Of a DNA stretch of 64,000 bases, positions 4,469 through 19,183 are shown piece by piece. Below the pieces are notes generated by a model. That model was not told where the DNA came from. It saw nothing but the letters and a program-made list of their open reading frames with translations, and made no database searches. Location of the stretch: the NCBI GenBank assembly GCA_021613535.1, contig CP075493.1:16120001-16184000 (forward strand), given 5' to 3'. The stretch is from Adineta vaga (Eukaryota; Animalia; Rotifera). How positions within the stretch are numbered: position 1 is the first letter of the stretch; every line of letters starts with the position of its first letter. The translations under genes were made by a program, and so were the position numbers.

Positions 4469-4724
4469 AAGTGTTCAAGTAAAAAATCTAACGAATAGTT
4501 TTGTACTTATCTTGCATGATTGATATTTTACTTCGAAAATTAAATGATTTTTTTGAGAATTTTTGTGTAAACAATTAAAGTCTTGATAAAATAATTTGTT
4601 TGACGAATTATCATTGAAGACAAACAAAAAGAAAACAATTCAAATCTTCTAGATTTTACGTCAGGCATCTCGTCGTTTGTCGAAACAGCGGTAATACTAT
4701 TCAGCATCTCGAGGCAATGCAGTT

Positions 4725-5058
4725 ATCTTGAGGGTGTGGATATAGGCGAGAGTAAGTGGGTGCAGGTGCGACTGCGGGTGGGTAAGTGGGCGTAGATGTG
4801 GTAGAAGATAAAAGAATACACCCACCCACACCCTCAAGTTCTTCATATGACTGCTAATGATCCAACAGCTATACTTGTACTTACACAAAATATGTTTAAT
4901 CTTTTGTACATTATATGTTAAATATGAACGTGATTCATGAAAACGTAAATCTGGAGCTGATCTTAGCAAATATTTATAATATTTTGAGGGTATGAGTGAG
5001 GGTGGATGAGAGTACGAAAAGAAAGATGAATCCTCACCCACACCCTCACCCTCAAGAT
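4725..5058. repeat. Two adjacent telomeric-repeat hairpins (4727-4838, 4984-5055)
   Basis: Each is TTGAGGGT..spacer..ACCCTCAA; the outer 12 bp ATCTTGAGGGTG / CACCCTCAAGAT are perfectly inverted. Confidence 0.75.
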
Positions 5059-10500: not shown

Positions 10501-12833
10501 CTACTATTTTTTCAGTTTCTTAAGACGTTATTGAAGCTCACTCAAAAACATAAAGTACGTTGAGCCTTCCCAAGCCTCCGCTACTTCAAATCAGGGAAGT
10601 TTGAACCTCTCCAAGCCTCATGCCTCCATTGCCTATGATGTAACAGCAAACGTTTGACAAATCTTTATTTCAGTGAAATCTTAATTTAAATTCTGCTTGG
10701 CTGGTGAGAGTATATATATACAGTAGAACCCCTCTTACTGAACACCCCTCCTTAGTGAAAACTATTTTCCAGTTCCGACTATATAATTTTCCTCTGTAAT
10801 GGGAACATTGTAGAGGGTGTTGTTACATTTCAACTTAAAACAGTGTATTCTATTGGCTAGTCTGATTTTTGACTATAGAGAAAAAGCTGTTAGCGCAAGT
10901 CCTGTGGGATTAAAATGTAAAATACGATGAACCTTCGGATATTTTGTAACGTACATACAGCTTCTATGATTTTGCGTATACAGTGCAAGTATTTACTAGA
11001 AGTACCGGCTTTTGAGAGGGAGGGGCACGGGAAAGGAGGTCATCGAGTCTGTCAGTCACGTCCGTGGGGGTGGGAGAGGATGGGTGCAAATTTTTGCCCT
11101 TATACACTTCAGCACTCTCTTTCAGATCATGTTTCACAAAATACTATTAAGTGTATAACACGAAATATATATTGTGTACTTTTCTGCTGACAAGTTTCAT
11201 TCACTAAAAAGCAAATGTATGTTTGTCTGTTAGAACGGTCAAAATTAGAGATTAGTTTCAAGGATTAAAAAAAACATACTTTATTGTAATTGTTAATGGC
11301 CAAAAGAAGTAAAGTTGTATATTTCTTTCAATTCATTATAAGTCGAATTAGGCAGCTACTCTGTTTTTCTCACTCTCTTTTGCTTCCTTTGGTATGCATA
11401 CCATTTGCTTGATGGGAGGAGGTGTCATGTACTTCGTCCATGATTCTTATACTCCTCAACAAATTTCATTCCCCTTCATTCCATTGTTCTCTTCTTCCTG
11501 TCTCTTCCATCAATAAAAATCTATCACACAGTTAACGATAGAGCACTACGAAATGTAGATTCACATAGTTTGGTTATACACATTTATGGGCAAATAAAAC
11601 ATGAATATTAACTTTACTTTGATCTACGAAAAAAATGAACTAAACAAAACGATTTTTGTATTCATATTGAAATACAAATAAATTTTCAATCAGAATATTC
11701 TTTTATTAAAATAAATTGATTAATTTTCGTTTAAAATGACGACAGATTAAATAAAATTCTTTTCGAAAACTTTTTGATGTTATTCTATAGAAATAAAATG
11801 TTATCTAAAATAGATTTTTTTTCTATATTTCTTGAATATATAAAAAGAGTATTACGAAAACTTGAATTTGCATAGTTTTATTGAACTAGTTTTTGTAATT
11901 ACACGAAAATGAGAAGAACTAGAGCTTTCAGCACATCAAGTGCCATCGTCAGTAGGTGAATAATGTTGTGATGATGTTACAGCGAGTGATAGTGAACTAT
12001 ATTTGATTATTACTGAATATGAAATACAAATAATAACAAATGATAGAATAATATCCAGAGTATTTTGATTTATCTAGTCATCATGTTTAAGCTAGGTTTT
12101 GTAGTCCAGGCCCGAAAGTATAGATGTTATCGTGTATGATGATATGTTCAATGTTGCTCTTTGTTAGATATAGATATCGGTGGTCTAGAAGATGATGATA
12201 TCGGTGATATCTTTTTAGTTATCTTTGTTATAAGTTGAATACTGTACCTTGTTTGATTGTTAATTTGATGATATATGAGGTTAGATATATGTTCGATGTA
12301 TGATTTCCGAATGATCTAGGTTTTCTGTCTGTAGTTTAAATTGAGAGAAGATTTTTCTTGATAGTCACTGTTGTTTTTATTTACTTACAAGCAAGTACTG
12401 ATTCTTCTCTTCGCTATTCAACTTTGACATTGGTACCTATTATTCAAGATAAGTGATCATTATTATGTGCGAGAGATTATAGTTTTATTGAGTTTTAAAA
12501 AGATAAAAACCTTTCCTCTTCCCACCCCTTCCCAATCAGGGGTGACGGGTTCTTCACCGAGAGGTGCTAACATAATAGCCGATCAATAATATGATCAAGG
12601 CACATATGCCAGCGAGTTTGTGTGGTCCTGAGCTCAAGTGAGAAATTATCAAGGGGGAAAAAGCAGGACTTCAGACTTCAGAAGTCCAGAAATACCGAGA
12701 AGTACCAAGAAGTCCAAAGAAGTAGAAAAATGCATCTAAAAATAAATAAAAAATTTTGATGTGTAGTTGGATATATAGAAAATGTACTTTCAAAAAAAAG
12801 ATTCTATTTCAAGAAGTAATCAAATGTATATAT

Positions 12834-15539
12834 TTAATTTTTGTAACTACTTTGAATAACAGGAGAGAGTCGGTCGTTTGCTAAGTGGCTATTTTTCTCA
12901 GTCAAAAGCCAAGAGGCTGATTGCTTGTATAGAAACTTCTGAATACCATTTATTTTAATTTTAAAATATGCATTTTGTTGGTGGGATTCTATTCTTTCAC
13001 AAATCTTCATGCCAGTGAAGTTGTCTTTAACTCTAGTTAGATTGTTATCGGCATTATCTTGATCATCAAAAATATCATCATCATCCTGTTCAGCATTGAT
13101 AAGCTCATTATTATTATCTTCAGTATCTTCTTCATCTTCAAGATCGAATTCATCATTATTACCTTCATCGTGTGTTATCTGCGTAGAGTAATCAAACATT
13201 TTTGAGCTTGTACTAAATTGTCGAAATACATATTTGCTTAACAGGTTCATGTCAAAAAGATTATATTTCTTCAGCGTTTCCGATATTCCTAACCGTTCAG
13301 TTAATTGAAGAGCCTGTTCAAACGCATCCGAAATTATATTTTCCACATCCATTGGATCAATATCATCTAGTTTTTGCAAAGATACTCGATGAGCATCGTG
13401 TTTGTGTTTGTGATGAATGGGAAACAATAAAGAATTACTATGATTTTGACCGGTTAATTGATCACATTTAATTCCTAATAATATCGAAAGCTTCTGTGAT
13501 CGATGCAGAAAATCAGCAACTGTAAAATTAATTATCGTTGAGAATGTACCACTTAATGACCTAGCGTTGCGAAACATTGATTCACATGACTGAGAATTGA
13601 ATAGATAAATATTCAAAGCTTCTTTTGGTAAATGTTTTTCCTTGACTAGTAAAATTATATACAGCAAAGTGTGGGCGTTAATTTCAACAGACAAATAAAC
13701 TGTTTTAGTAATAAAAAAATTTTCTTTGCTGTTTCTTTTTGTCGATGATGATGCTGTTGCTGTAAACTGTTTATGCTGGATCCAAGTCCACCACATCCTA
13801 CACAAAAACACAAGACACCAAGCTGATTTTAAACCTACAAAGAAAGAAAATAAGAAGGAATGTTTTTATATGAAAGAAAGATATCTACGTTCGTTAATGC
13901 TAGTTGATTTCTCAACATAAGTTTGTATTATCATTTTCAACATTACTAAATAAACAAATGTTCCATATGTTTCAGTTTCATTCAATAATAAAGAAAGTAT
14001 ATCATCTGAAGCAATTGTCGCACACGATTTATAATTTTGCTTGTCCTTCGGATTGAGATCAGTTCGTGTTAATCCATGATCTAGTTTAGAATAATCATTA
14101 TTTTCGATCATATCAATTAGATGTTCCATTGATATGCATTGACGACCAAAACGAAGCTGAGCCGTGCTTGACAATAGTCGGTTTCTCCATTTTGTAACCA
14201 AATGAACCGGATCTTGACAAAATAGAAGCAATTGCTTGCTTCTTAAAAAGAACCAGGACCACCGAGTAACGATTTCTACATTGAAAGATTCTTGATGATC
14301 TTCCATATTGAAATGAGGTAATGAGGCAAAAAAACCACTTGCTAAGCGCATAGCGCGTACATATTTCGCATCTCCATCTTAAATAAACAGGCAATTAAGA
14401 CGCCGTACGTTGACAATAGTAAATTCAAATGAAAACAACATCATTTTACCTGTTGAAAAACCAATAATGCGAATATTCTTCTCCAAACAATTGTTAAAGA
14501 TGAATAACCATCGTCGCAATATGTCTATTGATGTATAAGTATTCACAATACCATAGCCGGATAACAAGAAAGCAGGTGGAGCAGATGAATGGTTTAATGA
14601 AGGTAATGGTTGAATCATATGTATATTAAACAATGATGATCTATCTGATGACTCAAACCATGATTTTAACTGATCGAATGATTCTGTCCGGTAGTATTTA
14701 GAAATTGGTAGACCATCAAAAAGTGGTGTGGCAAACCCAATAAAAGAGTTTGTTTGTTGATCATAATTTATTTTTCTTAAAACACCAGTACAATCTTCAG
14801 ACCCGAATGCATATTTAACATTTATTCGTTTAAAATAACTTTCTAGAGCATTAAAACGAAATTCACCTTCATTTATTTTACGATCACTATCTAATATTAA
14901 TTTTGTTAATATTTGAACACTAGGCAAAGCACAAGGTAGATTCATCCTGACAAATTGATAAGTCATTTTCCCACCCATTATATACAATGCTAAAGCAAAC
15001 TATCGAATCGATTCTGAATAACGATAGTGATTTGGTGATTTTGTTAAATTGTATAGGATGGTATCAATGAACTTTTCCGAAAATGTTGATTCTGTCTTTG
15101 TTCCTTTTTCATTTTCTTTGTACCATGTTAATAAAGATCTTAACAAAGAGTTCTTTTTTATCAAGTCGAGAAACTTCTGGTCTTGATCGTCGTTTGGTAG
15201 TTGATCTCGATCTTCATTCAATAATTGTTCTCGTTTTATATTTAAAAGATTTGTCAATAAAGATAAATTTGTTAAAAGACCATTTCGAATTATATAATCA
15301 CCGTTTTCGGTTTTAAAACACACTTGGTTTCGTAAAGAATTTATTTCTGATGAATTAAATCGAAATATGTCAAACACGTTAGAGGTGTTCAGAAATGCAT
15401 CTGCTGAATCAATAAGTTGAATTTTTAAGACTTCGCATAAAATTTCACCACTTAGTTGAGATATGCATCGGAAAAATTCATCACCTTTCAAACAAAATAT
15501 ATTGTCTGGCAAAAGGGTAATTTTGTACTGGTCATTCAT
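12834..15539 (-). pseudogene. P-element/THAP9-like DDE transposase, two introns, one in-frame stop
   Basis: SEDCT, ST|DGD (intron about 14379-14449), QDPVH (DxxH), DKQN and SQSCESMF motifs; second intron about 13835-13889; in-frame TAG at 15000-15002 (ESIR*FALALYIMGG). Confidence 0.8.
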
Positions 15540-16802
15540 TATTAGAGCGAATAATAAGAAATTTAAAAACTATTTTTAATTTTGAGTGGAAATAATCAAG
15601 ATAAAGTAAATTTATGAAAATATTTTCTGTATATTTTTGTTTCAAGTCTAAAACAAAATTAAGATTTTTCTTTCAAAATAAAAATAAAAAATACATATGG
15701 ATCGAACAGAAAAACTTTGTAAAAGCATTCGTTTTTCTAACTCTGAATCATAATCATGATCTTTCTATACATCAATGAATTTGCTTTCCAGAGGCCGCTC
15801 TTGTTCGTTATAAAATAGTTTATATAGCGCAATAGGTTAAGAATATAACTTTAATTTTTAATTCGCTCTTGTCGTCCGTTGTTTGTTACTGTTTGTTTAT
15901 TTTACTTACTATTAGTTTAGTTCATATTCTATTTGCTGTTCAAAAGCCGTTCTTTTGAAAATAGATTAACATCATTAAAGGATTCATGGTCATGTCTTTT
16001 CCAAAGGTATTTCATGATACGAAAAATTTACCAAGAAATATACTAACATTAGTTGATGACGATTTTTATCGCTTCGTTGAGCAACGTTTAGGTGTTTATC
16101 AAGCATTACTTTTAAAAATTCAACAAATTAATTCGGTTCCATGTTTTCTTCTATCTGGTGATCCTTGTGAGGTTTTAAATCTGAATATCGATGACGATGA
16201 TGTCAATGATCTGAAACGTAAAATGTGCTTTATATTGTCTGACAGTTCATGTTTCATTAAGCCAGGTGTAAGAACCGGTTTTAAATGTTTAAACGAATTA
16301 TTATCAAAGGAAACCGACCACAAATTAAAACAATCGAGAAATATAAGAACAGAATTACCAACATTTTCTTCAGTGAATATTCTGATATCACCGTCGTCCA
16401 TCTTGACATCGTCTATAACAACAACGATATCAACTCAGCAACCAACGATGCCACAAGGACTAGAGCAGACATTAATAACATCAGCATCACAACAACCAAC
16501 AGCAGCTTCAGCTTCGCAACAATCAGCTACAACGCCGATACCACAAGAAACAACATCAACACCATCATCTTATGTTCCATCATCAATATCAATTTCTGAA
16601 CACCGGAAGTATTTATTAAATTTATTGAAACATTGGTGTTCAAATCATAAAAATGAATTTAATCTTGAAACTTTCGATTTGAAAGATGGCAAAGATTTCA
16701 TGCTGTATGTGAAACGTGGTGCAAACGATGTTATCGAAGCTAGTATAAAATGTAACTGTGGTCGACTGATCATTTTGACGAAGAAAGATGAAAATTTTCA
16801 AT

Positions 16803-18070
16803 CTCCCAGCGCTAAAATAAAGTTAAAAAATAAAACAATTAGATGTATACGATTCAAATGTATTTATTTCGAACTTTTATCATGAATAGATAGAGGAATG
16901 TGTAATGTACAAAAATACAATAAAATCAATTTAAGCATTAATAACTTCTTGCATAACAGTCAAAATATGCAAAATGTACGAATTTATAACCTTTTGAGGA
17001 ATAGCATCACATCCATTGTCAATTGCTTGTTCAATTTCGACTTTGGTTTTTGGTTGTTGTCTTTGCACATAGCTCTTGAGCCAAGACCACACGTATTCGA
17101 TTGCATTGAATTCAGGCGAATAAGCAGGCACATCGAGGAGTTCTAATCGATTTTCTTCGAACCATGTTAGCATGGCTGGTGTTTTATGTAATGGAATATT
17201 GTCTTGATAAAAGAAGAGATGACGATGATTTGATATATGTGGTACAAAGTACGTAGTGAGTAGTTGTTGATACAATAATGAATTCATGTAACCTTCATAT
17301 CTCCTAAATACTTTCCCACCCCACCATATGACACCCCATATTTGAGCATGTGCTTTGATGTTGTCAACATAATGTGTTGGCCGTTGTGAACCTGATTTTG
17401 CCCAAGCAATTGTACCGGTATTTTGAATAGTAAATATCTTCTCGTCCGTGAATGACCACTTTTTAATATTAGTATTTATATATTTCTGTGAAAATAATAG
17501 CTTTGATTGTTGTTGTGCTAATGTAAGTGACTTTTTAACTACTTGCTGATATGGACGATATCCTAAATCACGACGATATTTTTGAACAGTGCGAACACTA
17601 ACACGTTTATGCATGACTTGTAAAATATCGTTTGCAAGAACAATAGCAGTTGCTGTAGGTTTTTTCCTAATTAATTCATCGAGTTTTTTCATTTCTTCAT
17701 TATTAAGACATGTAGGACGACCGGTCGATTTACCACCATTGATCTCTCCTGTTTGATTGTAATGAGATAATATTTTACAAATTGCAGCTGGTGTACACTT
17801 ATGTTGTCGTGCAATTGTTTCTAATTTCTTTCCATCTCTTTCTCGTTCCATTATTATTTGAAGACGTTCGACATTACTAAAATGGCTCATTTTTGACTAC
17901 TTTTGTTCAAAATAGAAAACATAAGAAACAAGACGGAAACGAATCATCTATATATACCGTTGTGTAGTGTTTTAAGTTGTCTATGCACTGATATGTTACT
18001 AATTCTTGGATAATGAATTATGAGCGCGCACTATACTTTTGTTTTTTTAACGCTATTTTAGCGCTGGGAG
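16803..18070 (-). mobile_element. Tc1-like (DD34E) transposon, full length, 1268 bp
   Basis: TIR CTCCCAGCGCTAAAATA (17 bp perfect, about 30 bp imperfect); AAT on both flanks. Confidence 0.92.
16931..17890 (-). CDS. IS630-Tc1-mariner transposase, DD34E
   Basis: 319-aa intact ORF; HTH plus GRP; FTDEK, YQDN and SPEFNAIE with 34 residues between D and E. Confidence 0.95.
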   Translation of the reverse strand: MSHFSNVERLQIIMERERDGKKLETIARQHKCTPAAICKILSHYNQTGEINGGKSTGRPTCLNNEEMKKLDELIRKKPTATAIVLANDILQVMHKRVSVRTVQKYRRDLGYRPYQQVVKKSLTLAQQQSKLLFSQKYINTNIKKWSFTDEKIFTIQNTGTIAWAKSGSQRPTHYVDNIKAHAQIWGVIWWGGKVFRRYEGYMNSLLYQQLLTTYFVPHISNHRHLFFYQDNIPLHKTPAMLTWFEENRLELLDVPAYSPEFNAIEYVWSWLKSYVQRQQPKTKVEIEQAIDNGCDAIPQKVINSYILHILTVMQEVINA

Positions 18071-19183
18071 AATTGTCCAATTATCAAAAACATCTTCGTA
18101 CGAAAGGGTGTACTTATATGAACTCGTTGAAGGAAAAATATGGAGAAGGAAAGAAATTGAAACTTCAACAAGCAGCAGATGGTTTAACGTCGTCAAACTC
18201 CGTCGTATCGGCTTCGGTAGTATCATCACAACAACAGAAGGCTGAACCACAAGTGCCTGCTGATCTTTCGAATGATTCGTTGTCGGTTCAGGATTCACTT
18301 ACTTTAGATACTCAAACAACAATATCTCAAACAAACATTCGTAAACGCAGTCAACCATCATCTCAATCATCATCTCAATCATCATCTCAAAAGACGAAAA
18401 GACATCGTGGTTGAATTAATCAACCTTTGTTTCTCAATTAGCACCTTTTTATGTTGTATTTACTATTTGTCGCACAAGATTTTGTCTGGAACGTGCACTT
18501 TACTTTCAGTTTTCATAATATGTCGTTCTTCCTTTCACATCTAATTATTCTATTATTTACGTTTTATATAGCTATATGCTAAGTACGAAGAACGATTATA
18601 CTATCTTTCAAAGCAAGTGTAACCAATTTATTTCTACAGACTTGTAATCTTTTTTATTCATTTGCGTACTGTTCTGATTTGTGTGATTTTGCGTTATTTG
18701 TTTTTTCAAAATGCTTTATCGTTTTAAATATTACAAATGGATACCACATCATCAGTATTCATATCATGAAAGTACAGAGAAGTACAAAGAAGTACACGAA
18801 GTACAGAAGTCTGCTTTTTCCCCCTTGATTATAAATGTCATTTGTTCAATAAAAATGATATTCTTTCAAAAGATAACTTGATAACTCATTGACTTTTGAT
18901 TTCGATCGCTTCTTTTTTTATCAAAAACTATTTGTGTGTTTTCTATGATAAATAGTGGACATAACTATTTGTCATATATATATATATATACTTTTTTTGT
19001 CCGACAAAATTCAACCCTTTACTTCCACGTAGTGTCGGATGGAAACGTTAACATATACAGATTGTTAACGGCTGAAAAGAGCTATGGTGTTACTATATCG
19101 GTCATAACGATTGATATTGTTGTTGTTGATGAAACAGATGATACTTATTCGTGTTTGTATATTGTAGATTAAATCTTTTATTG

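Follow-up and report, generated by a model that had tools for sequence, protein, structure and literature searches.

P elements are a textbook one-protein system, and a transposon of the bdelloid rotifer Adineta vaga raises the question of what a second gene does in an element with a P-type transposase, when the products of both genes begin with the same kind of domain. The element lies in a stretch of 64,000 nucleotides that was analysed as a whole and is called the window; positions refer to it unless a chromosome is named. The original prediction, made from the letters of this stretch, proposed a head-to-head two-gene transposon with a possible two-subunit transposase.

Ends, genes and state of the window copy

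Positions 12650-18827 of the window are a DNA transposon bounded by perfect 17-bp inverted ends (TIRs) with the sequence CAAGGGGGAAAAAGCAG. The predicted TIRs were found to be fully complementary (Table 1), and a genome-wide count gave 154 occurrences of their first 15 bp versus one of the reversed control. These 15 bp are constant across all subfamilies and also in Rotaria, while the subterminal repeats vary by subfamily (GAAGTAC, GGACTCCA, GGATCC and GATTTAAAT). The motif AGAAGTMC has 8 matches in the window, 5 of them within the two element ends, at a chance expectation of 2.4 for the whole window. About 150 termini of the family and many MITEs are present in the A. vaga genome. A perfect target site duplication (TSD) of 8 bp was observed at four insertions (C5:172443-175473, L074, L079 and L081) and an imperfect one at two others (7/8 and 6/8). 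The window copy is flanked by just a 5-bp repeat, ATTAT, unlike the 8-bp duplications of the family, and no target duplication was found at the flanks of the chromosome 2 copy.

Table 1. Features of the transposon and of the element nested in it (window positions)
Feature	Position	Strand	Remarks
Left TIR, 17 bp	12650..12666	+	Perfect inverted match to 18811-18827
Left subterminal repeats	12667..12730	+	ACTTC/GAAGTMC units ~10 bp apart; read from sequence, motif count
Transposase exon 3, includes stop codon	12834..13834	-	SQSCES, catalytic E motif, 13595-13572; acidic tract; C-terminal domain
Transposase intron 2, 54 nt	13835..13888	-	GT..AG; absent from paralogue L025
Transposase exon 2	13889..14377	-	Insertion domain of P-type core; dN/dS 0.12
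Transposase intron 1, 72 nt	14378..14449	-	GT..AG; splicing restores family consensus
Transposase exon 1	14450..15539	-	SAM-like N-domain 15539-15195; THAP9-like HTH ~15032-14930; in-frame TAG 15002-15000; first half of RNase H core with SEDCTG 14807-14784
Spacer between divergent start codons, 446 bp	15540..15985	.	Presumed bidirectional promoter, by position
ORF2 part 1	15986..16802	+	SAM-like N-domain 15986-16345; Ser/Thr-rich linker; first half of C2HC domain 16589-16802 with CxC 16751-16759
Nested Tc1-like element, 1268 bp	16803..18070	-	Not part of the P-like element; Pfam DDE_3, TIRs, empty site
ORF2 part 2	18074..18414	+	Second half of C2HC domain with SNYQKH...C 18076-18111; Ser-rich tail; basic C-terminal motifs 18337-18354 and 18391-18411; stop codon
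Right subterminal repeats	18740..18810	+	GAAGTAC units, 10-bp spacing; sequence and motif count
Right TIR, 17 bp	18811..18827	+	Perfect complement of left TIR

The two genes are divergent. Their start codons, ATG at 15539 for the transposase (minus strand) and ATG at 15986 for ORF2 (plus strand), are 446 bp apart, close to the 450 bp estimated earlier, and the relatives L074 and L076 have spacers of like length (456 and 465 bp). Three sequencing runs presumed to be RNA gave only tiny exact contigs over 16175-16800 and none over the transposase.

The transposase gene consists of three exons with about 859 codons. Intron 1 interrupts the codon of the second catalytic D, and the spliced sequence GFST-D-GDAKY equals the family consensus; the intron-free paralogue L025 reads through the site of intron 2. 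Exon 1 is broken by an in-frame TAG. The relative L074 has Q at this position and a variant contig from a 2013 run has CAG. Exon 3 shares 78% amino acid identity with the intact relative L074 at a dN/dS of 0.15, and dN/dS values of 0.11-0.23 were obtained for the transposase. No basic nuclear-import motif was apparent in this protein.

ORF2 is split inside its CxC...H...C finger by a Tc1-like element, which encodes a DDE_3 transposase of 319 amino acids at 16931-17890 (Pfam DDE_3, E 1.2e-17), has TIRs forming a 34-nt inverted repeat and is flanked on both sides by AAT (16800-16802 and 18071-18073). The chromosome 2 copy contains the empty site, and this copy together with the relatives supports the continuity of ORF2 across the insertion. 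Because of the premature TAG in the transposase and the divided ORF2 finger the window copy is dead and unable to act by itself. The original prediction had overlooked the nested element, the two transposase introns, the TAG and the 5-bp-only flank.

Affiliation of the transposase with the P superfamily

The window transposase is spliced and broken; its exons were searched separately, natural full-length relatives served for whole-protein searches, and the structure model is an AlphaFold model of the full-length relative P0151. Foldseek with this model returned the Drosophila P element transposase (6pe2/6p5a) as the best match (E 1.4e-9, TM 0.68 by target), the next family being Hermes (E 3.6e-3). 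In VIA the Drosophila P transposase came first at a Z of 21.2, the alignment covering 414 of 456 residues, ahead of Transib (10.6) and RAG1 (9.1). The model has the P-type architecture of an HTH, an RNase H-like core and a large insertion domain. The catalytic acids D247 (strand 1), D379 (after strand 4) and E628 (helix past the insertion domain) are invariant in 25 transposases, and the window transposase retains SEDCTG, D(G)DAKY and SQSCES. In relatives PF12017 (THAP9-like HTH) scored 25-29 bits against a cut-off of 23, no other P or THAP9 family of Pfam scoring. Pfam gave no match on the window exons; the HTH of the window transposase is cut by the in-frame stop codon. Sequence and profile searches of the PDB with transposase halves yielded nothing relevant, and 6p5a was not among the matches.

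A THAP finger was matched by Pfam in none of the transposases scanned. In its place the models predict an N-terminal SAM-like domain of ~110 residues, followed by a long helix. An N-terminal THAP zinc finger is typical of described members of the P superfamily, whose TSDs measure 7-8 bp. We treat the finger as typical of the superfamily, not as defining it, because transposon superfamilies are defined by their catalytic core. The earlier description of P-like catalytic motifs without a THAP finger was borne out by both structure searches and by the absence of THAP matches. The window element is a defective cut-and-paste DNA transposon of the P superfamily. A RAG/Transib-like reading, based on the 5-bp flank and the head-to-head pair, was rejected, since the TSD of the family is 8 bp and the fold is far closer to P. 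The P-superfamily lineage with a SAM-like domain and ORF2 has so far been seen only in bdelloid rotifers.

The shared N-terminal domain and the distribution of ORF2

A recount of the N-termini of transposase and ORF2 gave 18 ungapped identities in 41 residues. BLASTP extended the similarity, which had been expected to continue past this segment, over 105 residues (30% identity, E 2e-12). Searched against the whole genome in six frames, each N-terminus retrieved the other (E 2.7e-8 and 4.7e-9), and separately built profiles aligned with a probability of 99.7% and an E of 9.1e-26. As judged from these alignments the N-termini are truly homologous, and the predicted paralogy is significant at the profile level.

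The AlphaFold model of ORF2 reached a pLDDT > 90 in both domains. In an exhaustive VIA search with the N-domain about 25 of the 30 top structural matches were SAM domains, at Z 5-7.3, middling values by VIA's own note. These matches covered whole chains (rmsd ~2.0-2.4 Å over 60-80 residues), and several were heterodimeric SAM pairs; RNA polymerase alpha CTD, the NusA C-terminal domain and the RAD51 N-domain were found among the lower matches. The modelled N-domain has the five-helix bundle fold of SAM domains, and the SAM-like pattern guessed earlier is supported by structural matches. Other searches returned less: a language-model search yielded no more than weak leads to SAM, neither the 13 N-domain members nor their profile had a SAM sequence match in Pfam or the PDB, and the matches of the Atlas shape search were all rotifer clusters of the family itself. 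When the complete two-domain model of ORF2 was submitted to Foldseek, no match reached E <= 0.001, the SAM fold emerging only in the VIA search.

In the ORF2 protein of about 320-385 amino acids the SAM-like domain is followed by a low-complexity linker, a CxC-x17-19-H-x5-C domain and, at the C-terminus, a basic tail. The CxC..SNYQKH..C finger recognized in the first reading is real, its C, C, H and C being invariant in 21 relatives. Of the two proteins, ORF2 is the sole carrier of a cysteine/histidine finger and of a conserved KRR...KR(S)R tail. A dN/dS of 0.24 against L074 indicates purifying selection. The C2HC domain had no sequence match in Pfam or the PDB, its structural matches were weak alpha/beta sandwiches only, and an Atlas feature search gave no usable match. 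A BED-type zinc finger was rejected on spacing, which differs from Cx2C...Hx3-5[H/C], and on the lack of a zf-BED match in Pfam or the PDB; a Myb match was likewise not obtained in ORF2.

ORF2 lies upstream of the transposase in every clade examined of Adineta and Rotaria, either head-to-head or in tandem. The A. vaga copies with an upstream ORF2 are the window copy, the chromosome 2 copy, C3:2.18 Mb, C2:15.55 Mb and C2:0.26 Mb; the other loci are L074, L076, L077, L079, L080, L081, L083 and L084 (loci L074-L084 were drawn from Rotaria genome records and environmental assemblies). Thus the predicted head-to-head layout holds for the window and part of the subfamilies, the arrangement being tandem in about half of them. 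The proposed survey of other copies for ORF2 also had a mixed outcome: all clades examined have it, but some A. vaga copies do not (C3:313005-317749, C3:18620669-18625375 and C3:20005576-20011920). Rotaria relatives of these copies do carry ORF2. Single-gene subfamilies as a general claim were rejected; a related copy retains an ORF2 remnant and a Rotaria relative has ORF2.

Possible roles of ORF2 and comparison with known systems

On the modelled structures, a P-type transposon with a SAM-sharing second gene points to a two-protein transposition machine. Our best explanation, to which we assign a probability of about 0.5, is that the window element is a defective bdelloid P-superfamily copy whose ORF2 is a SAM-paired DNA-binding and nuclear-import subunit. 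In this reading the two SAM-like domains would pair. ORF2 would attach to the subterminal repeats typical of each subfamily (GAAGTAC units in the window element), providing sequence-specific DNA binding as well as nuclear import, and would deliver the catalytic subunit to the conserved ends of 15-17 bp. There cleavage and 8-bp staggered insertion would occur as in P elements. For this division of labour speak the terminal 15 bp, constant while the subterminal repeats differ, and the finger and basic tail of ORF2. Somewhat more tentatively, THAP may have been replaced by a SAM-like pairing domain, with end recognition and import moved to a paralogous partner, which would make this an obligate heteromeric P-type transposase.

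A complex prediction for the pair, suggested from the outset, scored 0.36 versus 0.01 for the best control, rated as weak support; without a good prior, a pass in this score range is more likely to be false than true. At least 76% of the contacts agreed between runs, with a partner pLDDT of at least 80; among 78 solved complexes 51 attain the mark applied, among 108 mismatched pairs 2 do so. SAM-SAM complexes are abundant among solved structures, which counts against the weight of the score. Further points stand against the SAM-paired subunit. The C2HC domain has no known relatives, and DNA binding by it is a guess because neither a sequence match nor a clear structural match was found. The SAM-like fold overlaps with helix-hairpin-helix DNA-binding domains, ORF2-less A. 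vaga copies exist, and P-element repressors likewise share an N-terminal module with the transposase.

This last feature leads to a competing reading, which we regard as unlikely but worth weighing: ORF2 could be a dedicated regulator or repressor that limits transposition through inactive mixed oligomers or occupied subterminal sites, as the KP and 66-kDa proteins limit transposition of the Drosophila P element. The rotifer transposase retains its own HTH and might bind the conserved termini unaided, and conservation with purifying selection fits a regulator as well as a cofactor. However, the P repressors are shortened proteins made from the transposase gene itself, whereas ORF2 is encoded separately and has a finger and an import signal of its own. 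In the rotifer element the one obvious sequence-specific module sits in ORF2, and the transposase has no basic import motif. One would also expect some lineages to have lost a gene that acts only as a brake, yet ORF2 was kept in every clade examined. Less probable still is a shared N-domain of helix-hairpin-helix type, with which both proteins would bind transposon DNA independently and ORF2 would add contacts or bending. The lower structural matches are of this type, so that the domain could bind DNA rather than protein; it occupies the position of THAP, the DNA binder of P elements, and ORF2-less copies still have it. Nevertheless, protein-pairing SAM domains rank highest and are the most frequent among the matches, and the interface in the complex prediction was consistent and scored far above the controls. 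It appears highly improbable that ORF2 was merely captured, or arose by partial duplication, and travels as a passenger without a role in transposition, even though its N-domain could stem from duplication of the transposase 5' end and tandem-type ORF2s cluster with their own transposases in the N-domain tree (92/85 support). Its C-domain is conserved with the invariant finger residues, and comparative sequence data indicate that ORF2 is not a passenger, because it accompanies the transposase in all clades examined, in two genera, and is under purifying selection.

With Drosophila P and human THAP9 the rotifer element shares the fold of HTH, RNase H core and insertion domain, the PF12017 HTH, the placement of the acidic triad, the 8-bp TSD, and short TIRs with subterminal repeats. 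Sequence matches to the transposase are limited to the HTH (Pfam; no PDB match). GTP acts as a cofactor in the P superfamily, whose insertion domain aligns structurally with that of the rotifer model. It differs in having a SAM-like domain instead of the THAP finger and a second conserved gene. The P-element KP and 66-kDa repressors are also second proteins with the N-terminal module of the transposase, but they are same-gene truncations sharing the DNA-binding THAP, whereas ORF2 is encoded apart from the transposase and has a finger of its own.

PIF/Harbinger elements resemble the rotifer element in having two genes inside TIRs and, as far as sequence motifs tell, an accessory protein with a DNA-binding-type module and a nuclear-import signal. 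In the reconstructed Harbinger3_DR the accessory protein reportedly attaches to subterminal repeats, recruits the transposase and brings it into the nucleus; by analogy, the working principle of ORF2 may resemble that of the Myb-like protein of Harbinger. In contrast, the Harbinger transposase belongs to an unrelated superfamily, the TSD is 3 bp and the SANT/Myb partner shares no domain with the transposase. Membership in PIF/Harbinger was rejected, the rotifer transposase being P-type, its partner without a Myb match and the TSD 8 bp. ProtoRAG and RAG1-RAG2 also show a head-to-head pair in TIRs and an RNase H transposase with an insertion domain (RAG1, a distant structural match, Z 9.1). Unlike in the rotifer element, the RAG2-like protein is of kelch/PHD type and shares nothing with the RAG1-like protein, termini start with CAC and the TSD is 5 bp; the 5-bp flank of the window copy is not the rule of the rotifer family. 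KolobokP, a recently described animal DNA transposon lineage, has a His-Me endonuclease as second conserved protein beside the transposase (PMC9587614). According to that description it belongs to another superfamily, its accessory protein is an enzyme and the two proteins have no common domain.

No published description of a two-gene P-type family was found in the searchable literature, in agreement with the original prediction, which knew of no family with this layout. If the reading of ORF2 as a SAM-paired subunit is true, a SAM-joined heteromeric design would be one not described for any eukaryotic cut-and-paste superfamily. It would represent a two-component logic like that of Harbinger and RAG, arrived at independently, and would illustrate how a transposase can exchange its DNA-binding head. 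The result would be a modular scaffold in which the core reads conserved termini and an exchangeable partner reads variable subterminal sites, a design that engineers of targeted transposases want. For rotifer genomics, the analysis gives a name to a family annotated only as 'uncharacterized' or 'THAP9-like HTH'.

Structure of the window element and class of its transposase

Perfect inverted repeats of 17 bp delimit the element. Directly inside both repeats GAAGTAC/GAAGTCC units with a spacing of 10 bp were found. The motif AGAAGTMC matched eight times in the 64-kb window, where 2.4 matches are expected, and five of the eight lay within the two element ends. Two ACTTC units adjoin the left inverted repeat and mirror the right end; the left array then turns to GAAGT, and most units at both ends share one direction along the element. 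The same asymmetry, with AAAGTAC units, was observed for the element at 2.18 Mb of A. vaga contig 3. The window copy is flanked by a 5-bp ATTAT, which is not the rule for the family.

The minus strand carries four long open stretches in one common frame, and comparison with paralogues and relatives gave a transposase gene of three exons. Its single in-frame TAG occupies a position that is glutamine in the relatives and CAG in a variant contig from a 2013 run.

The transposase was modelled using a natural full-length relative from Rotaria socialis, P0151, in place of the window protein; 25 family members were aligned as input (mean pLDDT 73, pTM 0.68). In Foldseek the best match was the Drosophila P element transposase (E 1.4e-9, TM 0.68–0.69 by target), with Hermes trailing by six orders of magnitude. 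VIA aligned 414 of 456 residues with the P element transposase at Z 21.2; Transib scored 10.6, RAG1 9.1 and Hermes 7.2. Invariant acidic residues of the model are located in strand 1, after strand 4 and in the helix following the insertion domain. Among the Pfam families of P/THAP9 transposases only PF12017 (THAP9-like HTH) was hit, barely over the cut-off in relatives; PDB searches with the transposase, by sequence and by profile, revealed nothing relevant. Target duplications of relatives and short non-autonomous copies were 8 bp long, perfect in four cases and near-perfect in two. Thus, by its core fold and its target duplication the element belongs to the P superfamily, and, in line with the original observation, it has no THAP finger.

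ORF2 as a second gene of the family

ORF2 starts 446 bp from the transposase start and is interrupted by a nested 1268-bp Tc1-like element with 34-nt inverted ends and a DDE_3 transposase (E 1.2e-17). The 319-aa open reading frame of this insertion is intact and comprises DDE_3 and HTH_Tnp_Tc3_2 domains; its flanks are a 3-bp AAT duplication in place of TA. The boundaries were set by the uninterrupted site (TTTTCAATTGTCC) of a second copy on contig 2; this copy lacks the Tc1-like insertion and thereby reveals the empty site as well as the AAT duplication. In sequencing runs guessed to be RNA, the exact contigs were small and confined to the middle of ORF2.

The contig 2 copy is 98–99% identical to the window element over most of its length (95% in the right-hand 0.7 kb), and its flanks are unrelated to those of the window from the first base of the inverted repeat. 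It exhibits an internal deletion, and 284 bp are inserted at codon 5 of its ORF2. The insertion contains many CATATGACGTCATATG-like palindromes and is possibly another small non-autonomous element. Because the TAG is common to both copies and each carries further lesions, the two assembled copies are dead and were probably mobilised in trans.

The element at locus L074 belongs to the same subfamily as the window copy; it is intact, 5175 bp long, and has an identical inverted repeat and an 8-bp duplication. Comparison of the window with L074 gave a dN/dS of 0.24 for ORF2 and 0.11–0.23 for the transposase. In 8 of 8 transposase clades with fetched loci (mostly from Rotaria genome records, with L074 and L080 from environmental assemblies), an ORF2 with the N-terminal domain and the C2HC domain lies upstream of the transposase. 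The head-to-head layout originally described holds for the window, contig 2 and several other loci, whereas other loci are arranged in tandem. ORF2 is missing from a few A. vaga copies; in this group a related copy retains an ORF2 remnant, and a Rotaria relative has ORF2.

Coordinates of the element, its copies and relatives (C1–C6, also G000:C1 etc., A. vaga contigs; L, fetched loci; positions without prefix, window)
Feature	Position	Strand	Remark
Element	12650-18827
Subterminal arrays	12667-12730; 18740-18810
Transposase, three exons	15539-14450; 14377-13889; 13834-12837	minus	comparison with paralogues and relatives
Transposase, two introns		minus	72 nt and 54 nt, GT..AG; comparison with paralogues and relatives
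In-frame TAG	15002-15000	minus
ORF2	start 15986; interrupted 16802/16803; continues 18074; end 18414	plus
Tc1-like element	16803-18070
AAT duplication	16800-16802; 18071-18073
Contig 2 copy	C2:16112208-16116684
Deletion in contig 2 copy	15216-15911		window equivalent
284-bp insertion in contig 2 copy	L017, about 4670-4952	reverse	L017 = G000:C2:16110200-16118700
Head-to-head pairs, A. vaga	window; contig 2 copy; C3:2.18 Mb; C3:0.63 Mb; C1:17.93 Mb
Tandem pairs, A. vaga	C2:15.55 Mb; C2:0.26 Mb; C3:15.93 Mb; C3:19.87 Mb; C6:0.90 Mb
Head-to-head clade loci	L074; L076; L077; L084
Tandem clade loci	L079; L080; L081; L083
Copy without ORF2 (example)	C3:313005-317749
piggyBac-type gene around C3:2.18 Mb element	G000:C3:2183086-2184519; 2190093-2190501
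Short paired termini (examples)	G000:C1:17064174-17064555; C3:1825458-1825839; C3:5388723-5389104; C3:1993473-1993620
3-kb non-autonomous copy	C5:172443-175473		perfect 8-bp duplication
Tandem-type element in HSP70 gene	L081/L082, 1947-7529		Rotaria sp. Silwood2
O-FucT genes	L076, 1389-2537; 12059-13207		inverted
Stand-alone 165-aa ORF	G000:C1:9284160-9284654 (L041:1444-1938)	minus

About 154 family termini were detected genome-wide. Many of them are paired at 148–382 bp and thus represent MITE-like derivatives; the listed places concentrate towards contig ends. The element at C3:2.18 Mb, whose left terminus is absent or degenerate, lies inside a piggyBac-type transposase gene with the reading frame resuming beyond the insertion. 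The Silwood2 element has the perfect 8-bp duplication GGTGAACG. At the Rotaria socialis locus L076, two O-FucT genes of identical length flank the element and a DDE_3 gene, which may reflect an inverted segmental duplication around transposons.

The N-terminal domain common to both proteins

The predicted N-terminal similarity between transposase and ORF2 proved to be real. BLASTP of the window proteins gave 31/105 identities (E 2e-12), and in a six-frame genome search either N-terminus retrieved the other one and those of other subfamilies. Profiles built separately from seven transposase and five ORF2 N-termini aligned over 102 columns with a probability of 99.7% (E 9.1e-26). Pfam and PDB sequence searches gave no match for this domain of about 110 residues. 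Its profile retrieved 557 cluster representatives from 1.84 billion proteins, 387 of them at E <= 1e-10, and all named ones were from bdelloid rotifers (Rotaria, Adineta, Didymodactylos).

For ORF2 the closest intact relative, P0004 from the L074 element (69% identity over the N-terminal domain), was modelled. Two confident domains were obtained (residues 10–120 and 181–288, pLDDT above 90 in both). In an exhaustive structural search the first matched almost only SAM domains, in agreement with the SAM-like pattern suggested originally, and the best matches were the partners of the CNK/HYP SAM heterodimer. Z scores were a middling 5–7.3 (rmsd about 2 Å over 60–80 residues) in a very uniform list. 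In both modelled proteins a beta hairpin follows the bundle, and then a long helix.

The second, C2HC domain comprises a helix, four strands and a further pair of helices, and the C, C, H and C of its CxC-x17-19-H-x5-C pattern are invariant. It gave no Pfam or PDB match and no clear fold match. Conserved basic motifs at the C-terminal end of ORF2 resemble a bipartite import signal.

In the N-domain tree head-to-head ORF2s formed one group (support 93/86), and tandem ORF2s adjoined their own transposases (92/85). The tandem placement points to either gene conversion or a second duplication in these sequences, and head-to-head and tandem ORF2s may still have a single origin. A stand-alone 165-aa open reading frame on contig 1 combines the SAM-like domain with a basic tail; it lacks a finger, and the 3.4 kb examined around the locus contain no transposase. 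This frame could represent a truncated ORF2 or else a domesticated fragment.

Proposed roles and relation to known two-component transposons

Across all subfamilies the outermost 15 bp of the termini are identical, and the subterminal repeats vary by subfamily (GAAGTAC, AAAGTAC, GGACTCCA, GGATCC/GGATTC, GATTTAAAT). On the simplest reading this probably reflects a division of labour. The conserved transposase core with its HTH would read the conserved terminus, by analogy with the P element complex, and the variable repeats would be read by the variable partner, ORF2. The paralogous SAM-like domains would couple the two proteins, and ORF2 would additionally provide nuclear import. Complex prediction for the two N-terminal domains of the window gave 0.36, 0.35 and 0.37 (controls 0.00–0.01), with at least 76% of contacts agreeing between runs and a partner pLDDT of at least 80. 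Among solved complexes 51 of 78 attain the pass mark of the method, as do 2 of 108 mismatched pairs. Passes at such low scores frequently turn out wrong, and the predictor may have memorised SAM pairs, so that the models amount to a weak hint at pairing of the two domains.

The main rival to this division of labour is that ORF2 acts as a repressor, which would poison the transposase or compete with it, as KP does in the case of P. The other alternative assigns DNA binding to the N-terminal domain itself; a few helix-hairpin-helix DNA-binding domains occurred among its lower-ranked structural matches.

Two-component DNA transposons are known from Harbinger, CACTA, MuDR, ProtoRAG and KolobokP. 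The rotifer element likewise has two genes but differs from these in belonging to the P superfamily and in the SAM-like domain common to both proteins. What is new is a two-gene design within the P superfamily, in which THAP is replaced by a SAM-like domain and the partner carries the same domain. Full-text searches of the literature on rotifer P-like elements, rotifer THAP9, transposon SAM domains and two-ORF P elements gave no description of the family, which may be deposited in Repbase or Dfam. In the databases its proteins are labelled uncharacterised or 'THAP9-like HTH domain-containing', and one A. vaga member is present in UniProt (B3G4J8) as 'unknown'.
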